A stretch of DNA of 63,964 nt, filler included, from Reticulomyxa filosa (GCA_000512085.1; 14 parts of 14 records of this genome joined end to end with filler, not necessarily neighbours in it); one strand, 5' to 3'; shown: positions 5,852 through 22,580, numbered from the whole stretch's first letter. Notes: generated by a model from the sequence alone, not told the origin. Made by a program: numbers and translations.

Positions 5852-8800
5852 TCAGTTTTGGACATCCTCAAAGTAAAGCTTTCCTTTTCTTTTTTTGGCG
5901 ACAACTTTGGGAGAAGAACTAACAGTTTGAAGTTGATCAAAATCGATATTAGTAACATTAACATTGGGTTCAGCGGGTTGATATTGAAAAAGGGATTGTT
6001 CCAGCTCCTCGTCCAATGGGAATTGCGGAGAATCAACAGTGGTTTTGGAAAAGCGAATATTAATGCATTCGACAAGATCGTTTGGATTCCATTGATGAAA
6101 GTCCAAAGCAAGTCTGCAAGAGGAGCCTGTTTCCACCTCATCAGCATTTGTGTCTCGGAAGTGAGCACCAGACTGTTCATACACGATTTGGCCTTGTCGT
6201 TTAACTCGAAAGTGTCCATTCTTGGCAAATTTGCCATTGTTAATCAATACAACAGGGACAGGTTTGGCATCATGGGGATTTACAATCTCTTGCACAGTGG
6301 CATGTCCAAGCACGGTAATGTCTTGCTTCATGGGCAATTTGTCTTCCAAGAATTTCTTTTATGGATCATATATTTTTTTTTAATCCAAAAAAAAAATAAA
6401 TAAAATTGTTTTGATGTTTAATGCAGAAACAAACAAAAACTAAACGATGAAATCTTCAAACAAATGGAAAATGACATTCTGATTAAAGACTTGGACCCGT
6501 TTGCGTTTGTAGTTTTGTTTTTTGAGCGGCGTTCGAAAGGACAAAATGACGCAGTTTTTAAAGTCCATTTCTTTGACTAACTCGTCGGTGACAGGGCCAA
6601 TGTCCTTTCGAACAATGTTAATCTCCAAGTCGTCGTTGGGGATTTTGATCTCTTGCAAGTACTTTTCCACCGCCTCGATACTCCCCATGCAGTCGGCACG
6701 AATCCAAACATTGATTATCCTGGGGTCTTCCGAAAGCTGCCATTTGCTAGCCAAAGATAAGTCATCCTCTTCGTCGTCGATCACAAACGCCTTTGGAGAC
6801 TCGTTGAATGCCGACATTGGATCTCTGTGTTTGACCCGCTTTTGTCGTTGCAATTTACGCGTCATTGCGAGTTTCTCTTTGAAATATTGTTTCTTTTCTC
6901 GCGTTTCGCTTACTGCTCGCGCATGTGCTTGGTCATTGGCCGCAAGGAGCAAGGAGCCTTGTTTTTTTTAAAAAAACAAACAAATATATATAAATATATA
7001 AATATGTAAATAATATATGTATATATATGTATATATGTATATTTATTTATGAACAAATTTTTTTTACAAAACCAATGGGTGGAAACTCTTTGAATCCCAA
7101 AAATGACACCGGAGTAGATGGTCCTGCACTGGCAATGGATTTGTGTGTTTCATCTTGCAAGCGCGTGATGCGAACAGGGTGTAATTGATCAGGCGCAAAG
7201 CTAAGTCCCCATTGCGCAATGTCCCGTCTTGCACTAAAGCGTGGACCATGTCCCATCTTTGCTTGATTTTTTCGCTTCGATCACGACAACTTCGGCGGAT
7301 GCCTTTGAATTGCCCCGACAGTCTTCCATCTCACAAACCAAGTCCAGTGATTGTAGCAATTCAGATATGCCATGGCCCGTTTTGGCGGATATCGAAATCA
7401 TCTTTATTTTTTTTGCAAATAAGCAATGAGTTAGACAAAGATAAAAAAGGAAAAAACAAAGTTTGAACTGACATCAACATCGTGAGAATAAACCCCCAAT
7501 GCCTCCAATTGTTGTTTGACTTTTGTTGGATTGGCTTCTGGCTTGTCGCATTTGTTTAATGCGACGACAAAGGGCAGACGTTCTTTGCGAATGATTCTGT
7601 GTGCAATGAATGCGTATACGTTTGTTTTGTAAACAACGAAATGAAATCGAATATGACAACTTTTTTTATTGCAACTTAACGCCAAACTCTCTCTCGTCTG
7701 CGGTTGTATCCCTTCACAAGCGTCGATCATAAGAATGGCGGCATCGACGGCATGTGCACCCCTCCTTCGCATCCCTGTGAACGCGGCATGTCCGGGAGTG
7801 TCAAAGACGATACATTTGGAGTGCGAGCATTGACGAGGCATATCGACAGTAAACGCACCAATCGATTGAGTAATGCCACCAATCTCTTTGTCTGCCAATC
7901 GTGTGTGACGCAGATAGTCAAGAAAGGTGGTCTTGCCGTGGTCGACGTGTCCCAATATGCAAAGCACGGGCGACCGCTTTGGAAGACGCACGTACTGTTC
8001 GGGAGAATACGTGCCATATTTCGAGGATACGTCGGCACTCCATTGTTCCAACACGACTTTGGTCTTGGGACGGATCATTTGTGCCACAAGTTCTCCCGCC
8101 TAATTTCCAATATTCACCAATGTACAAATCAATAGTTACACAATAAAATGTGAATAAAACGTAACGTCTTGAGTGATCCAATCGTGTTCATAGATTTCCA
8201 AAGTTTGCAAAGCAGCTTTGAGGGTGTTTGGAGAAGTGTGGAGCAATTTGCAATAATCTGACAACTTGCCAAAGACAGGCAATACAATCAAGTCCGGAGG
8301 GGGTCTATTTTCGTAATCAATGGTTGGCGGCTTTCCCAATTCGATATCAATCTGTCGAGCCCTCTCTCGACCACTGTCGTCATTGTCGTCCATTTCCAAC
8401 CACTTTTGTTCTTCCTCCAAGTTGTTGTACTTTTCGTATATTTCATTCAACATGCGATCCGTATCCTCTATTTCTGTCTCGCTGGATCTGGCTTTCATTT
8501 CGAGTCTGTTTCGTTTCATTTCAGATTGACATTTCTCAAGCATATTCCTACATACACATTAGTATGTGTATAGAACATACTCTTCAGAGTCGCGTTGGGC
8601 AGTTGGATGAGGCTTGATATCATCGTCTTCGGCAAAGAGATTATTCCCTTGTAGAGTGTGTTGCAAAATAGGACCTCGTTGGAGATTATGCGGATCTGCA
8701 CTTTGTCGTAACTCTCCCAACAACTCACTCTCACTTGGATCGACTGGTTTCGATGGCCCATTTGTGCTGTACGCTTCGGAGTCGTACACCTGATCATTCG

Positions 8801-12434: not shown

Positions 12435-13205
12435 ATGACAACGGTTAAGGATTATGAGGATCATTTATCTCAGCTTTCCGTGGAATTACAGAGTTCCAGA
12501 CAACAATTGGAGCGCCAAAGACAGAAAGTACTCTCGACATGGGTTACTCACGCACGCTGCTTCAACCGATTCCCAAAGGAAATAAATGACATGATACTAA
12601 ACGATTTTATAGATTATTCGATTTTGCTTCGCATGTACTTTGGAACCGACTCATTTTCCAACACAGCAGCAGCCAAGGTTCTTTGGATTGACGAAGAATA
12701 CGAGGTTACCGATGGTAAACTAGGGACCGATACACAATCCAAATATTTTTTCACTGGGCTATTTGATCGAAATGGGAAATTAAAACGTTTTGTAGTAAAT
12801 CAGGTAGCAAGAAATGAGGTCTTGACGTATCGAAAGTATACGTTCATATATTTTTCATGGAGATTGAGTTTATTAGAGCATGGAAATTATGTGTTGATGG
12901 ACCGAGTTCAAAATACATTGAGTCAACACCGTGTTATTGTCATTTTAAGAAGTGGGCCGGTCATATATCCATATGCCTCATTGCAGGCAGCAGAAAAGCA
13001 GTTTGAAGCAACCCCGGTTTATCAAACTGTGGTTTTGATGTATAATGATAAAATACTTAAAAAGAGAAACGATCAAAATCTATGTTGGTCGATTGCAGTT
13101 GGGAATGTTTTGGTAGAACTAATTGACAATTTCTATTCCGAGGAATTGTACAAAGGAAAAAATCTACAAAAATATTCTTTGGCAACAGTGATGAAAATTG
13201 CTTGA
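12435..13205 (+). CDS. Hypothetical intronless protein (256 aa) with N-terminal coiled coil
   Basis: Long ATG-initiated ORF of globular composition between DDX47 and BMS1. No family recognised. Confidence 0.65.
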   Translation: MTTVKDYEDHLSQLSVELQSSRQQLERQRQKVLSTWVTHARCFNRFPKEINDMILNDFIDYSILLRMYFGTDSFSNTAAAKVLWIDEEYEVTDGKLGTDTQSKYFFTGLFDRNGKLKRFVVNQVARNEVLTYRKYTFIYFSWRLSLLEHGNYVLMDRVQNTLSQHRVIVILRSGPVIYPYASLQAAEKQFEATPVYQTVVLMYNDKILKKRNDQNLCWSIAVGNVLVELIDNFYSEELYKGKNLQKYSLATVMKIA

Positions 13206-13549
13206 TGTACACATTTTATTCATTTTTTTCACAAAATAAACCCTTGTATTTGTTTATTTTGTGATGGTTTGAGAATAAATTCATTTGTGTATTCAAGTGT
13301 TTTTGGTTTTGTTTCCATAACAATAAACACCAATAATGAACGCCAACAATCCTTTTTTTTACAAGGATTGAGGTCCCAAAACTTAAAAAAGATTTTAATG
13401 CATCAGATTGAAGTCGCAATAAAGTACAACAAGCTAATTGATGGATCGGTTTATGAGAAATAACATCATTTTAAGACAAAATAAGAAAAAAAATCGCAAT
13501 AAAATAAAACGGTGACAGTTTTGTAATGCATGAGAGGAAAAGTGATACA

Positions 13550-16500
13550 TTATTTCTTTTGCAATCTCCATTCTTTGTGAAATTGATCTCCACGAGTTGC
13601 CTCGAATGCGTTCGATTTTTTGTGACCACGTAAGCGCTCACGAATTTGTACACGTCGACGTTTTCTGGCTTTTTCATCTTCTTCTTTTTTTTTTGAGCGT
13701 TGCTTTTTCGTACTTTTCGTTTGGTCTCTCGTTCTTTCTGTTAAAAAAAAAAACCGTGACAAGATGCGCGGAAAAACGAAACAAGCAAAATTCTTTCCCC
13801 CTACTTTGCACATTTACAAGATTACCTCAGAGCGATTAGCAACAATTTCACTTAGGCTATGAACCAATTTTTGGGCTTCTTTTGTTTCTTTGTCAGGATA
13901 TTGCATTGGGATTCTCTCCGAAGATTTGGGATCACGAAATTTTTGTCGCATGTTGAATGGCAATTGTTTCTGTATGCTGGTGGGGATTTTTAATGTATTG
14001 AACAAACGGAGTTTCTTTCTTCCGTGGCTTCGATAAACTGAATCTTCTTTGAATGCAGGTCTGGCGTTGTTTTCTGCCCTCAATTGCCCGATTGTCTTCA
14101 TTCCTTTCCATTGATCCTTAAAAGTCAACAGCAAGGATCGGACAGGGTTATAAAATTGTTGTGGGGCAATCGGGACCCAAGACTTTAAAAATATCATATC
14201 CGATTTCAACAATCGATCCTCGAAAGTGGCTCGAAAGTTACCGACTTTTCCTTCGGCCTTTTTAATACTGCCACGTACTCCACTTACTGTCTGAATTTTG
14301 GCACCAACGAATTTGGCCACCTCCAAATTGCTATTAAACATTCCTTTTACAAAGCATGTGTTACGATGGATTTCATACGGTTCTCCAATTATCTTTAATT
14401 TCTTTACGATTTTGTATGATGTGTTGCAGGACAATACTGTCCCACTGGCAGCAATGCGAAACTCTTGCTAAAAATATATAAGCATATACATCATGTGTAT
14501 ATAATAGGAACAAACAAATAGATGATAAAAAACATAAATATAAACGCAACAGAATTCGGTGAACAATCCACATAACCAATAAAACCAAATCCGGGCTGTG
14601 CAATGGGTCCATAAAAAATAGTTAAGCAATGCATGTGTTCGGGGGTATACTTAACCAAGCGCAATCGTTTTTGATTTCTGTCTTCGACACAGAACAAAGG
14701 TACGGTTTGGAAGCGCCTCCAACCCAAAGACACGACTAAGGGGTCATTGAATTTGAGCAATCGTTTGTACCATCGATGCTTTTTAATACGGCACTGAACA
14801 AAGCCAAATTCCATTTCTTGGGGCAGCAATCCACCCAGAATAACAGGGAAGCGCAAATCAAAGTTCATATCGAGTTCACTGGGGACATTTTCAAGAATAA
14901 TGCGAACATAGGTCCCAGGGATATATCCACGGAATTCGTGTTGCAAAGATTCAGGCTCATTGGCAAATTCTTGGGCATTGATTTGGATTTGCTTTTCCAT
15001 TTCTGATCGCTGCATGTCCATCCAATACTCACCTCTTCCGCTGCCTGCGAGGTTTTTTCGGTCCATCTCGTCCTCACCCAGGCCTCCTTGGCCTCTTTTT
15101 TTACCTTGACGATCTTTTTTCACATTGTTTTCGCTGCCCTTTTTTTCAAATATTTTCCTTTGCTCTGCTTCGCTCACACCAGTTTTGTCGTAGTACGACT
15201 CTTTATGGAATAATCCAGCATCGTACATGCGATCGAATTCCTCTTTTTTTTTATTTTGCTTTGATTTTGAAATGCCTTTTCTTTGTCATCCTCGTTGTCA
15301 TTGTCATTATCGTTGTCATCATCGTGATCATGATTATCTTCATTGCCATATTTTTGTCTTTTTCGCTTTGCATTATTGGATTGAGCAAATTTGATTTTAT
15401 CTTCAATTGTTATGTCATCGCTGTTTGTAATTCCCTGCTCTTTCATCATTTGCTCCAAGCGATACTCCCAATCCAATTCATCCTCTTTCACTTCGTTTTC
15501 TGGATTGTCCATTGTCACACCTCCCAAGTCTTCAATGATTTGTCGGTCTTGTTGCACTATGGGATCGAATAAATCCGGATTTCGGTTTTGTGCTCTCTTT
15601 TCAACTTCTGATTGAAATTTTTTCGCTGCGACCCAGTCCCCTGTCACAAATCGGTTGCGAATGCTCTCTGTAACCTAACAGTGAATTATTGTATTTCGTT
15701 AATTAAATGTAACAAATATACATGTATACACAGATACATATATATATGTATATAATAAACAGAAGGTTTGTCCCAAGCATCCAAAGTCATATTATGCAAT
15801 GCAGTGACGGATGAATCGACCATGTCGATTTCACTCTTTTGAATGTGCGCTTTTTGACTCGGAAGAATTCCTCGTCACTACTGTCGTTATCATTGTCACT
15901 TTCGTCATCCTTGACATCATTATTCTCATCGTTCATTTTATTTTTGTTATTTTTTTCTTCTTTTTCTCCTTCTCCATACACCCATTCAAACAAGGTCATT
16001 TTTCGTTTCCACAACTCTTGTGCATTTGCCAGTAGTTGCTGTTTCCACTTGGCATTGCTTTCGCTTACACTCTGCGATGGATTGGCTTGTTTTTGTTTGT
16101 TGTTTTTTTTGTTCGGTTGTTTTTCTTTGCTTTCGTTTGATTGTTATTTTTCCCTTGATTTTCACCGTTGGCATTATTTGTATCATTTGCAGCGTCTGCA
16201 TCATTCATACCGCTTACGTCATTTATATTACTTATATCATTCATATCATCATCGTCATCATCTCCATCGCTATCATCAGTTTGTCGGACCTCATTTTGTT
16301 CATAGTCGTACTCGTCATTATCTTTGTCATTACCAATAACTGGCCATTCATGTTCGTCCGCCTCTTGATTGGATTGAATCCATTCGTCGACATTGTTGAA
16401 CTCATATCCTTCATCTTCGTTTTCATTTTCTTCGTTATTTGCACGTGTATCGTTATTATCAAAGGAATCGCCAAAGGGATTTCCGCTCTCTCCGCTGACC

Positions 16501-18070
16501 TCATCGTCAAAGATGACTCTCCTTCTCGTTCGTGGAGGCTCTGCATCGACATCGGCATTAGCTTTAGTGAACGTGCTATTCTTATTTGCCTTTGCCGCGG
16601 CAGTCGCAGCGACTTCAAGTTGTTCACTTCGAATAGGCTTGGAATCGGCAAAGATCTGCAATGTGCTATCTTTCATTCTGTCGTCCATTGCCGCCGTGGC
16701 TTTGGACATTTGTTCAATCATCAGTTGCGCATTGCCCGTTTTGATATCGGCGTAATGGACATTTTCATCTTCGTTGGCTTGCAACTTCAATCGTTGCAAG
16801 TATTGTTTGTCACTTTCCCAGCTTTGTTTGTTTTTGTCTATCGCTTTTCTCGAGTCGTTTCGCAGTGTGATATATGCCGCATGTTTGTCAAATACAATTG
16901 GCCCAATGTTTGCCATTGGCGCGTAGATTTTGCCGCTTTTGACCAAATGCCTCATTCGTTTCTGTGGCAATGGCACAGGGTCTTCCATTTCCTCCATTTC
17001 TTTGATGAAAAAATCACCGACGCCACAAAGGTGCACATTCATAGTAGAGCGGAAGTTGCATCCTCGAATGTACCCATAAAACGCAACAGTGCGATCGATT
17101 TTGGGATTGTTTTTAACAGCCACGGGTTCTGTCAAGTCTTCGTATCGATCCACTAACATGTAGGGGTGAGTATTTCGCCATTGCAATGGACGAAACTTCA
17201 GCACCGATATGAACCGAACTAAATTGCGGATATCGGTTTTGTAATACAATTGTCCAATCTTTTTGTCAATTCCCTTTAACACGAACAGCTTCGCTCCGCT
17301 GTAAATCTCTTTCCAAAACCGGTGTTTCACATGGTATACGATACTTTGTTTTTTTTGCAACTTCACATATTTGTCCAAATGTGTCAATACTCCCATCACA
17401 CGAGGAAATCCATGCAACTTTAATTTTTTTTTTTTTTAAAAAAAATTAGTTTAAATTGCATTACATTTTTTAAAAAAAAGGAAAACGCATATTCGCATCT
17501 TTTTTTTTTTTTAAAAAAAAAGGGGTCCATCCAAGGTCAGAACGGAACTTGAGCACAATTCAAAAATTCAAAGGTTTCCATTTCAAATCCGTAAGACGCG
17601 TCGACTAAAAGCAAAGCCAAATCGCACGTCTTGGCGACGTCGATCATGGCGTTGAGTTCGTTGGGACATTCCAAAAAGGTGATTCTGCGATGATTGCTCG
17701 CCAAAATGGTCATGGGACCTCGGCAGTCTGTTAGCTTGGTCGTCGTGTAGTGCTTCACCAACGACCGGATCAACAACGACTTGCCCACTTTAGGGGGACC
17801 CACTACTGCCACATACACTGGTGGCTCGAGCATGTCTTCTGTTATTCGCTTCGGTAGCAATGCGTGATGCTTTGTGTGCTCGCGGTCCATTAGACGTTTG
17901 ATGTGTTTCCATTTACTGTTGATATTCGATTGCGTATTTGCTTTTATATTGAACGCTTCTGGCTTTGTTATCCCCAGCTTCTTATTTCTTGCTGCTTCTT
18001 TTTTTCTTTTACTTACACTGTTCCCTGGCGCGGCGTGCTTCTTGTTCTCTTGTCCGGCACTCACCGGCAT
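13550..18070 (-). CDS. BMS1: Ribosome biogenesis GTPase Bms1 (multi-exon)
   Basis: PPVYVAVVGPPKVGKSLLIRSLVK, RRITFLECPN, GFEMETFEFLN, HGFPRVMGVLTHLD, LQWRNTHPY, IRNRFVTGDW, RIKKHRWY..LKFNDPL..SLGWRRFQT, KYTPEHMHC, IQTVSGVRGSIKKA. A few homopolymer frameshifts. Confidence 0.95.
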
Positions 18071-18621
18071 TGCTCGCTTTCGTTTTTTAACCACACACAA
18101 CACTTATCCAGTCACACTGTTACACGTCAGTCACACAAAATATATCACTTCCACCAACCCTTTTCTTACCTTCGGTGTATATGACATTGTGTTGTTTTAT
18201 ATATTTCCAATGTGAAGGAATTGTAAATGGATTTTTTTACCAATTTCAGATATTCAACTTTTTAAGTTGGGGGCTCACTCGGCTATTTTGACACCAACCT
18301 TTTTCAAAACAATATTATTTTACAAAGCAGACACAAAACATGTAAAGTTAAGCGGTCTTCTAAAATTGTATGAAAGAACGTCTTTATTTAAGTTGTGCAA
18401 TCACAATTTCTACTCTTCTTTCGGCGCAAAAGTGCCACTGTGAGATCTGTTTTTGCACTTTACGCAGCAACAGAAAGACAAAGAAGAAAAAAAGAGTTTC
18501 TGCCACTCCTTTTCCAAGAGTTTTGGTTTTTTCGTGTCGGAACCAGAAATTTTCCGAATTTGGAATCTGCGTAGTGCTTTTTTTTGTACTATTGTGAGTT
18601 ATTATTTGCATCCCCTTAGTG

Positions 18622-21600
18622 ATGTCGATGCAGCAACCAGGTTGGCGAGGCGGTGGTTTCCAAAACAACTACCAAACCTCTCACTTTGACAACGGGAGAT
18701 CTCACAAGTTCCAAGGTAAAGCGGACATCAATAATTTTGTTTTTTTTTACGTGAAATGATTGCTACCACAAAAAAAATAATGAAAAAAAATTTCACCACC
18801 TACAAAATCGCATCATTTTTATTAAAAAAAAAGAACAACCAGGCGGAGGACGTCCAATGGTCCCTTCCCAAGACCAAGGATTGGCATACAATCAAGGTGG
18901 TCGAATCCAAGCCCAAGGACAGCAACCATTGATGAACATCTCAGCAAGCAGTGGTCAGGAAACAGGCCTACCAACGACGCATTTGTACGCGCAACATTCA
19001 CACCAGCCACAGCATCAACTCCAATATCAACAACACCCACACCACGCACAACATCAACAACACCAACATTCGCACCAGCACCCACATCAACACCAGCATC
19101 AGCACGCGCACCCCCACGCCCACCCACACCAGCAACAACAACAACAACAACAGCAACATGCGCAAAATGTCGCTCACGGCTACGGTGGCCATTCCTCATT
19201 GCCCACGAAAGCCGTGTCGTCCGCAAGCGTGCAGACCAACACCTCGTCGATGTCTGGAGGATACCTGTCACAGGTGCAAAGTCATGGAGGCTCGGGCATT
19301 ATAACGAACCCACAGTTGAGTACCGACGTGACCAGCAGCGGCGCTCAAGGACAGTCACTCGAAACCAGTGGCAGAAACACCATTGCCAGCAATGAAGAAA
19401 CCTTGAAATCGGACAGTCTGAACACAAATCGGGATGTGACCCTGACAGCCGGTGCTGCAACCAATAGCGGGGACGATGTCGGCCCAACCGGTCAAGACGC
19501 ACCTTCGACCTTTGATAAACAACGCAAGCTTTCACCTGCTGTTTTTACCGCCCAGGAATTACAATGGCGTGGCACTTGCTACGAAGTCAAATGCGATGAA
19601 ACTTTCGCTGTTTACCAAGTTTCGATTTTTTACTTTCACAATTGCGCGTATTGCATATATACATGGCTTTGTTTTATTGTATGGGTATGAAACTACAAAC
19701 GATTTTTTTTTAAAAAAAAAAGGGATATGTCGTCGACTATGTCCCCGCCGGTGCGATCGTACAATATGAGTTAATTGTGTTTAAAAGTGAAATTTGCAAA
19801 CTCGTAACAAAGTGTGTAACTTGCACAACAAAAAAAAACAGAAATGGATGGAAGCCGGTAAGCACAGTGCCAATGGACTACATTCGACGAGTAGCGCCTG
19901 AGACGAATTACTCAACATGGCGTCCAAGAGAAGGAGCTCACATTGAAGTATGTCGAACGTTTCATTTTTAAATCAAACGACAACCTATAATAATACTTTG
20001 TTTGTCGTTATGCATGTGAACAACAGGTAAAAGCAAAAGCTGAGGAATCAGAACCATTTGGATGGTGGGGTGCCTCTGTAGTAATGGTGAAAGACAACGT
20101 AAGTACTCTCTTTGCTGTTTCTACTTTACGTCCTTTTCATGACATACGATGATTGTTGTTTTTTTTGTTATGTGAAGTTATACAAGATCCGATTTGACGG
20201 TTGGGGAGAAAATCATGACCAAATTTTAGATTTGGAAATGATTCGTCCATACAATAACGCGTTAGTTGTCTTTTTTTTTTTTTGGTTGAGAAATGAAAAA
20301 GAATCGTATGTTTGTCGAACAATTTCTTAAAAATTAGACCATGGTTTTCACCATCGGGCACTGAACGACTGCCAGAAAAAGTTCCTGAAGAAATGATCCA
20401 GTATTGCAAAGTGAAGAATGCGAAATGCAAATTTACGGATAATTTCAAATTGATCCGTGAAAGAATTGGATTATTCCATTTGGGATTGGGTCCTCGATGT
20501 GATGAAGTGTTGATTGTTGGAACGCGTAAACAATGTATCATGGCAAAACAACTTTTGAAATATTTGTGGGACTTGGAAATTCAATCCATTGATGAAGAAA
20601 AAAAGCTGATCGAAGACGAAAAGCAAGCACGAGATGAATATGAAATATTGAAAAAATGCCACAAATTGGAATTTGAATTTGACAAGAGCTTGACCAAACA
20701 TGTCATTGGAAGCAAACGAAGCTATGTTAGCAAAGCCGAGCAACTCGGAGGAGTCAGACATGTGTCTGTTACTGATGGTCATTGTGCCATCTTTGCCGAT
20801 ACTATCGAAGCCGCTGAAGCTGCACGAGAATTGCTGGAATTGAGCATGGACACAATTGATATCCCATTTGAATGCAAACGTAATTTAATTGGTGAAGGAG
20901 GTCAAAACATCTCCAATTTGCAAAAGGAATCAGGCGTCATGTTGATTAGTACATGGGATCATTATTGTGAAAGGTATTTTTTTTTTTTGTAAATATTTCC
21001 CTAGCAAAGACACTCTCTTATCTGTCGTATTTGTATGTGTTCATACATTTTTTTATTATCAAAGTGCGAAAATTCCTTTTGATCCAAGCGAAGTACCTGA
21101 TGGAAAGGTGCGCATGGTGATATTCGGACCAAAGGAACATGTCGCTCAAGCAAAAGCATTGATCGAAAATGATGTTCAAGCAACATTGGAAAAATTGGAT
21201 ATGCGTCGACGAGAAATGAGAGCGGACAGAGAATTGAGACAACGATCTTCTTATTCGCAACAAGGACGCTACGAATCATATTATGATCAAGACAACGAAA
21301 ATGGAAGAGACACTGAAGATACCTCAACAGAGCAACGTAAGCGCAGACGCGGAGGTGGAGATCGTGGAGATAGAGGGGATCGTGGAGATAGAGGGGATCG
21401 TGGAGATCGAGGAGATCGAGGAGATCGAGGATATCGTGGCCGAAGTGGACAACCTCGTGGTCCTGGTCGTGGTCGTGATAATCGAAGAAGAAATGATTAC
21501 GACCGAGGTTACGAACGAAAAGAAGACAATGATGCAAATGAAGAAAAACACAACGATACTCAAAATACTTATGCCCAGGAATGGGAGGAACGCAATGAAG

Positions 21601-21957
21601 ATGAGACCCAAGAACGCAACGAAACCAATGAAAACGCAGAAGCAAACCAATATGGAGACGATTTAGACGCTGATGCTGGCAGATATGATGACCAAAATGC
21701 TGCAGATAACTTTTCTGAAGAGGAGAGAGACAACTATGACTACGATTATGATGATCAATATTCAAGAGAAGACAGTGGACGTCAACCCAGACAAAGCCGA
21801 AAAAATCGCAAACCTCAACCGTTTTATGTTCAAGTTTAGTTTTTTTTTTCATTCTGTCCCTTTCTATTGTTTTATAATTGTTTTGGTTTTTAATGGTGCT
21901 TAGAAGGGAAGCAGACCTCAATCGTCAGGTGATGCAAACGCTGATCAAACCAATTAA
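18622..21957 (+). CDS. FMR1: Fragile-X family (FMR1/FXR-like) RNA-binding protein: Q/H-rich N-terminus, tandem Agenet/Tudor, KH0, KH1, KH2, RG-rich tail
   Basis: Spliced model gives YEVKCDETFAVYQGYVVD..VQYENGWKP..VPMDYIR, IEVKAKAEESEPFGWWGASVVMVKD..YKIRFDGWGENHDQILDLEMIRPYN, VPEEMIQYC, VIGSKRSYVSKAEQLGGV..AARELLE, LIGEGGQNISNLQKESGV and VIFGPKEHVAQAKALIE..RADRELRQ. These are colinear with remembered FMRP motifs. The symbol denotes family, not proven orthology. Confidence 0.85.
21357..21430 (+). repeat. Coding 9-bp tandem repeat encoding about 8 Gly-Asp-Arg units
   Basis: ggagatcgt/ggagataga/ggggatcgt units inside ORF 20967..21839. Confidence 0.9.
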
Positions 21958-22580
21958 TATTTGAAAACTGCTGTGCAAAAAAACCTTAACTTTTTTCCAA
22001 AATATGAAACCTAGTGAGGTTTGAATTTGTTTTATTCTGTTTTTTTGCTACTTTATGACCTTGAATCAAGGATGTTCTTCGGCAAAATCATCAATACTCA
22101 TAAAACGTGCAATCCTTTTAAACTTTTTCCTTTGTGGAAATGTTTTTCTCGTGCATCTACCTTAACAATACAATGATTTAAAAACTGTCTCCCTTTAAGA
22201 ACAAATAGTTTTTTTCTCTAACGCTTTTAATATTATGCTAGTGAATCTGTACTTACTGAATTTTTTGTAAGGATATCGAATTTTATGTAAAAATAGAAAC
22301 AAGCATTCATGTACCTCACCCCCGTTACCCTCACATACACAAAAGTGTAGTATATATAAATGAATTATCAAAGATACACTTAAATTTATTGCATTATTGC
22401 CGCTGTAGGGCAAGTCCCTATTATGAGTATCTGAACGTCAAGGGAACNNNNNNNNNNNNNNNNNNNNNNNNNNNNNNNNNNNNNNNNNNNNTTAATTAAT
22501 TAANNNNNNNNNNNNNNNNNNNNNNNNNNNNNNNNNNNNNNNNNNNNACCTCCTCGTCAATTTAAATATTATCGATTTAG

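Follow-up and report, generated by a model that had tools for sequence, protein, structure and literature searches.

The closest described systems are the animal proteins FMR1, FXR1 and FXR2 (structures 4qvz, 4ova, 2qnd, 3kuf and 3h8z), in which two Agenet domains and KH0 are followed by a helix, KH1, KH2, a second helix and an RG tail. The family is not known from yeasts or land plants. The fragile-X reviews PMC3361156 and PMC3807044 treat members from vertebrates and Drosophila alone, and an overview of RNA transport in eukaryotes likewise includes only vertebrate and fly members. The Tudor domains of FXR proteins bind trimethyl-lysine peptides (PMC2970552), and neuronal FMRP transports mRNA with microtubule motors (PMC3807044). 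A tandem Agenet fold is also present in plant readers such as ADCP1/AGDP1 and AGDP3, although KH domains are reported to be absent from plant Agenet proteins (PMC4634149).

Here we describe an FXR-like gene of the rhizarian Reticulomyxa filosa (GCA_000512085.1), located in a window of 63,964 nucleotides, which is the whole stretch of DNA analyzed. Our main reading, to which we assign a probability of roughly 0.85, is that it is a vertically inherited FXR orthologue encoding a predicted mRNP protein. The gene is a real, new member of the known FMR1/FXR family and extends the family's known age. A literature search, with subscription papers mostly outside its scope, returned no description of a protist FMRP. 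Because this scope was limited and automatic names already exist in the databases, the family may have been noticed in protists earlier. The surprise is also tempered by the fact that public databases already contain such proteins, one cluster of which was automatically named Fmr1-b.

Gene structure and transcript evidence

The FXR-like gene lies on the + strand of contig ASPP01008623.1 at window positions 18622-21957 and consists of nine exons encoding 881 aa. Its CDS of 2646 nt (881 codons plus the stop) contains 0 internal stops, and all eight introns (70-118 nt, 25-33% GC) have GT..AG borders. Exon 1 (18622-18715) carries the inferred start codon and a low-complexity N-terminus, and exon 2 (18834-19618) encodes a Q/H/S-rich extension and, from 19574, the first strands of Agenet1; 13 of its last 16 residues are identical to those of the homologue P0001. 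The middle of Agenet1 is encoded by exon 3 (19723-19769), which on its own is a weak match, and exon 4 (19842-19947) holds the end of Agenet1, the linker and the start of Agenet2. Agenet2 continues with its EP-GWW motif in exon 5 (20027-20098, 72 nt) and ends in exon 6 (20178-20260), where F-x-G-W residues resemble those of a chromo-barrel pocket. KH0, a long helix, KH1 and the N-terminal half of KH2 are encoded by exon 7 (20338-20973), and intron 7 (20974-21064) interrupts the variable loop of KH2. Exon 8 (21065-21833) encodes the end of KH2, the post-KH helix (to 21242), the RG tract and an acidic, Tyr-rich tail, and exon 9 (21904-21957) ends with the stop codon.

This model was compared with public sequencing runs. 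Run X1, which stems from one study, was available as contigs only and is RNA by guess, is mostly 90-99% identical to the FXR-like gene and therefore represents a related strain or species other than the sequenced strain. Its contigs cover the gene from about 18570 to 21970, with depth from 18569 at exon 1, and contain exact GT..AG joints for introns 2, 3, 4 and 8. For introns 1 (18715|18834), 5 and 6, the joints fit the same sites once the in-between letters are read, and at intron 7 some pieces stop at 20973 while others begin at 21065. All eight GT-AG introns are backed by this probable RNA run of a close relative, which points to expression of the gene. Runs X2 and X3 touch repeats only.

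Among the 40 best-supported differences between X1 and the gene, 13 synonymous changes and one replacement fall in exon 7, and six synonymous changes and no replacement in exon 8; the N-terminal extension has nine synonymous changes and 11 replacements. By these counts, purifying selection acts on exon 7. In the public annotation, the gene call is limited to about 20139-21833 (544 aa), with no recorded Pfam match. Exons 1-5 are missing from this call, a gap that may explain why the gene went unrecognised.

The neighbour of the FXR-like gene is a BMS1 region on the - strand (12531-18070, ORFs 13814-18103). The two genes stand head to head with about 550 nt between them (18070-18622) and may share a promoter. 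In the public annotation, BMS1 is divided into a 624-aa part with AARP2CN and a 696-aa part with RIBIOP_C, only about 65 nt apart, which are probably one gene. Besides BMS1, the neighbours include a DEAD-box helicase and an IF-2-like GTPase, so that translation and ribosome genes are abundant on this contig. The IF-2-like GTPase (7431-8087 and 5852-7256, - strand) is apparently split as well, with public calls of 544 aa and 405 aa. An intronless 256-aa ORF without a Pfam match lies between the helicase and BMS1 (12435-13205, + strand).

Domain architecture and predicted folds

The spliced gene was compared exon by exon in the searches, and the tandem-Agenet fold was taken from P0001 as a proxy. 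A preliminary description of this DNA had proposed a complete protein of FMR1/FXR architecture in a probable rhizarian. After splicing, all of the motifs that it quoted occur in frame and in order, and Agenet1, Agenet2, KH0, KH1, KH2, the helix and the RG-rich tail follow one another along the exons as in named animal FMR1/FXR proteins. Exons 4, 5, 6, 7 and 8 matched a profile of 12 named animal FMR1/FXR proteins at positions 34-56, 68-89, 92-117, 132-314 and 330-421, respectively, and thus colinearly, with single-comparison E values of 3e-16 for exon 7, 6e-8 for exon 8 and 3e-7 for exon 5. Along a non-animal profile, exons 2-8 tile positions 8-23, 24-39, 41-74, 75-98, 99-125, 151-331 and 345-393 without gap or overlap. 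The best PDB sequence match of exon 7 was FMRP KH1-KH2 (2qnd, E 1.7e-4), its identity to animal proteins being 41/178 (about 23% over the KH region), and the Agenet segments of P0001 were 40-80% identical to exons 2, 4, 5 and 6. Membership in the FMR1/FXR family is, in our judgement, hardly in doubt.

Single-domain searches gave a sparser picture. A Pfam scan of single exons detected KH_1 only, with no Agenet, KH_9 or Tudor_FRX1 match because each Agenet exon is too short. A BLASTP comparison of the KH0 part with shark FMR1 returned no match, and profile and fold tests were therefore needed. In these tests, KH0 (20360-20578, + strand) reached 97% in a profile-profile comparison, with 0 of 500 shuffles, and matched the fold of FMRP KH0 (4qvz 122-201). 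KH1 (20657-20839, + strand) matched the fold of FXR1 KH1 (2cpq), with its GxxG loop replaced by GSKR at 20708-20719. KH2 (20840-21170, + strand) has a GEGG loop at 20891-20902, carrying an acidic residue, and matched Pfam KH_1 at E 4e-9.

The AlphaFold model of exon 7 (pLDDT 94) was most similar to FMRP KH1-KH2 (2qnd, Z 11.5), and its comparison with 2cpq gave Z 10.0 and an rmsd of 1.4. Residues 4-89 of the model matched FMRP KH0 at Z 8.1 and an rmsd of 3.0, tied with other KH folds. For the N-terminal half, the model of P0001, the closest full-length homologue, gave Z 17.4 against the FMRP Agenet-Agenet-KH0 unit and Z 15.3 with an rmsd of 1.6 against the FXR1 tandem Tudor (3kuf), whereas plant Agenet readers scored lower, at Z 12-13. 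Because the folding alignments contained some animal rows, these folds are not fully independent of animal FMRP. Compared with the animal alignment, the putative methyl-lysine pocket of Agenet2 keeps Val and Trp-Trp, with Tyr replaced by Phe and Glu by Gln, and the WW and F-x-G-W aromatics are retained.

Unlike in animal FMR1/FXR, Agenet1 of the R. filosa protein is preceded by an extension of about 275 aa rich in Q, H and S, including a Gln/His-rich tract (18995-19159, + strand) of prion-like composition that is presumably disordered. Neither this extension nor the altered KH1 loop was mentioned in the preliminary description. The leucine pattern of the post-KH helix is only partly retained, and exon 8 had no FXMRP1_C_core or FXR_C1-3 Pfam match at E<=1. 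The same was true of the non-animal homologues scanned, and the FMRP C-terminal core (FXMRP1_C_core, FXR_C) appears to be an animal addition. An Arg/Gly-rich tract (21336-21491, + strand) does follow the KH region, as the preliminary description had claimed, and it consists mostly of DRG repeats (9-nt repeat at 21357-21439) where the animal proteins have an RGG box. Exon 8 contains 13 RG and only one RGG in a low-complexity sequence placed like the C-terminal RGG box. RRRGGG also matched the human RGG box, but only three other proteins compared contained it, and the match was dropped as low-complexity.

Relatives and predicted function

Profile A1, built from 24 proteins that all lie outside the animal clade, retrieved named FMR1/FXR1/FXR2 proteins at E 6e-95 to 4e-48, ahead of other KH proteins (2e-18 or weaker). 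In the PDB, its leading matches were FMRP/FXR chains only (about 1e-45 to 1e-16), followed by FUBP1 at 2e-10. In the reciprocal direction, too, FMR1/FXR is therefore the best-matching family. When exon 7 was searched against 1.84 billion representative sequences, 126 matches were obtained, 54 of which also had a tandem-Agenet N-terminus. Family members with Agenet and KH matches occur in three chlorarachniophytes, Chlorarachnion reptans, Lotharella globosa and Bigelowiella natans, and the Lotharella protein lies above the Pfam Tudor_FRX1 cut-off. The Fmr1-b cluster of the ESM Atlas has 54 members, with Perkinsozoa as the commonest group, and further deep branches come from environmental samples. 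All named non-animal records are from SAR, and the family likely ranges beyond SAR and animals.

We constructed an unrooted tree from 201 columns of the KH0-KH1-KH2 region, in which R. filosa is a long branch (1.21). The R. filosa protein grouped with eleven foraminifer-like proteins (98/98), apart from the animal clade (100/95), and an AU test rejected a forced grouping with animals (p 0.001). The foraminifer-like members P0001, P0002, P0003, P0008, P0009, P0151 and P0307, together with locus L005, share with R. filosa a near-identical KCDETFA and KAEESEP-GWW, but they keep the KH1 GxxG, carry a KH0 insert of 20-40 aa and show no more than 32-37% identity in exon 7. We infer that relatives of the P0001 type belong to Foraminifera. 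Within this clade, a conserved P0001 group stands against the divergent rows P0004, P0005 and P0010, possibly paralogues or proteins of distant species. The chlorarachniophyte proteins and the Fmr1-b cluster share the architecture of two Agenet domains plus KH domains but fall on separate branches, and Chlorarachnion lacks the second glycine in the loop of KH2, not in that of KH1.

A C-terminal aromatic-x-x-Lys motif also links R. filosa to the foraminifer-like proteins. In R. filosa it reads FYVQ|K across intron 8 (21822-21906, + strand) and resembles the VWKxK-type motif of the clade. The form [VK]-[WY]-x-x-K is conserved across this clade, some 20-28 residues before the C-terminus in otherwise unalignable tails; its carriers are P0001, P0002, P0003, P0006, P0008, P0009, P0151, P0307 and the R. 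filosa protein.

The second glycine of the KH1 loop is kept in 38 of 40 aligned rows, and its loss is therefore lineage-specific, a property of the R. filosa copy. Loss of GxxG should weaken RNA binding by a KH1 domain. Judging from the loop, the KH1 domain of R. filosa probably no longer binds RNA in the canonical GxxG manner. The reverse pattern, with the KH1 GxxG kept and the second glycine of KH2 lost, was seen in many non-animal homologues, namely P0014, P0111, P0089, P0081, P0049, P0029, P0070 and P0068.

From what is known of the family (PMC2970552, PMC3807044), the R. filosa protein would be a cytoplasmic mRNP protein. Through its tandem Agenet/KH0 end it would dimerise and contact other proteins, and it may also recognise methylated residues there; mRNA or ribosomes would be held by KH2 and the RG tract, and the disordered Q/H-rich and RG-rich ends could drive granule formation. 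The likely outcome would be translational repression and mRNA storage, and by analogy with animal members we consider a role as an mRNP repressor reasonably likely.

A more specific proposal, building on the preliminary description, is that mRNA is carried along reticulopodial microtubules and translated locally, far from the nuclei, as with FMRP in neurites. Motor-driven mRNA transport by neuronal FMRP (PMC3807044), the complete FXR architecture, and the clade-specific C-terminal motif and long disordered ends of the foraminifer-like homologues are consistent with this proposal, whereas the loss of the KH1 loop argues against it. Homologues are also found in many other lineages, among them the Perkinsozoa cluster and the flagellate Bigelowiella, which are not known for pseudopodial networks. 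Long pseudopodia are therefore not required, and reticulopodia do not explain the family. Transport of this kind may occur in R. filosa, although we regard it as doubtful, and it is not needed to explain the gene.

The degenerate KH1 loop would also fit a nuclear FXR orthologue whose tandem Agenet reads methylated histones, as in plant Agenet proteins and UHRF1, with RNA binding secondary or decayed. The trimethyl-lysine binding of FXR Tudors (PMC2970552) and the retained Agenet2 aromatics agree with such a role, and the next-best folds after FXR for the proxy P0001 are the plant AGDP/ADCP1 H3K9me readers. However, the protein retains its three KH folds and an RG tract, exon 7 shows the signature of purifying selection, and nearly all of the aligned relatives keep the KH1 loop, making a chromatin reader improbable compared with a cytoplasmic mRNP protein.

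Shared introns and the age of the family

As a vertebrate reference, exact intron positions were mapped in pipefish FXR2 (L011): the introns follow K17, E66 and E90 in phase 0 and interrupt N35 in phase 2, with additional later sites. Intron 2 (19619-19722), intron 4 (19948-20026) and intron 5 (20099-20177) of R. filosa, all on the + strand and in phase 0, occupy the positions of vertebrate introns 1 (after K17), 3 (after E66) and 4 (after E90), and three of the six core introns are thus shared. As the matching introns follow E66 and E90, exon 5 of R. filosa and exon 4 of vertebrates, which encode the same part of Agenet2 between the same borders, are both 72 nt long. Random placement would give at least three coincidences in 4-5 of 100,000 cases, a figure that ignores preferred insertion sites. 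Introns 6 and 7 are not common to pipefish FXR2. Intron 3 (19770-19841, + strand) shares phase 2 with vertebrate intron 2 but is placed two codons further upstream, possibly through intron sliding. In assembly L005, introns read by eye were present at R. filosa positions 4 and 6.

Of all the evidence, these shared introns speak most strongly for descent from a single ancestral gene with introns, and an ancient vertical origin of the R. filosa gene is very probable. The R. filosa gene would be a vertically inherited orthologue of animal FMR1/FXR1/FXR2. Its ancestral gene, already containing introns, would date to the common ancestor that Rhizaria share with animals, at or close to the last eukaryotic common ancestor, and would later have been lost in lineages such as yeasts and land plants.

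An old transfer of DNA from eukaryote to eukaryote, between the animal stem and SAR, or a divergent paralogue from an ancient duplication, would account for the split of the rhizarian sequences in the tree, with chlorarachniophytes away from the foraminifer-like group, and for the restriction of named non-animal records to SAR. The deep groups, however, are beyond the expected resolution of a 201-column tree, and there are many deep, unrelated non-animal branches. The AU test speaks against joining R. filosa with animals, and the introns held in common exclude transfer via mRNA, so we consider this origin very unlikely. Contamination by animal DNA, or a convergent joining of Tudor and KH domains that only resembles FMRP, could be invoked for the low identity to animal proteins (41/178 in exon 7). 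Both were ruled out, because the adjoining BMS1 on the same contig matches the R. filosa protein at 100% identity, the intron style is uniform, the nearest homologues are non-animal, the AU test rejects an animal placement, and three identical intron positions accompany an FMRP-type Agenet-Agenet-KH0 unit.

The preliminary description had suggested an origin much older than animals, and for the vertically inherited orthologue this is borne out by the reciprocal profile search, the folds, the three shared introns, the tree and the homologues in Cercozoa and Perkinsozoa. With three intron positions in common with a vertebrate gene, this RNA-regulating family is far older than animals and neurons, and most likely an ancient one among eukaryotes. 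Finding a full-length rhizarian orthologue that shares introns shifts the family's origin back to early eukaryotes. The wide natural alignment now available can be used to separate ancient features, namely the Agenet-KH0 unit, the KH1-KH2 pair and the post-KH helix, from presumed animal additions such as the C-core and the RGG box. On a speculative and rather unlikely reading, FMRP in neurons re-uses a solution that evolved long before for cells of very large size; if so, protists would be usable models for the basic FMRP mechanism. Since a rhizarian orthologue shares introns with the vertebrate gene, the basic job of the family must predate synapses.
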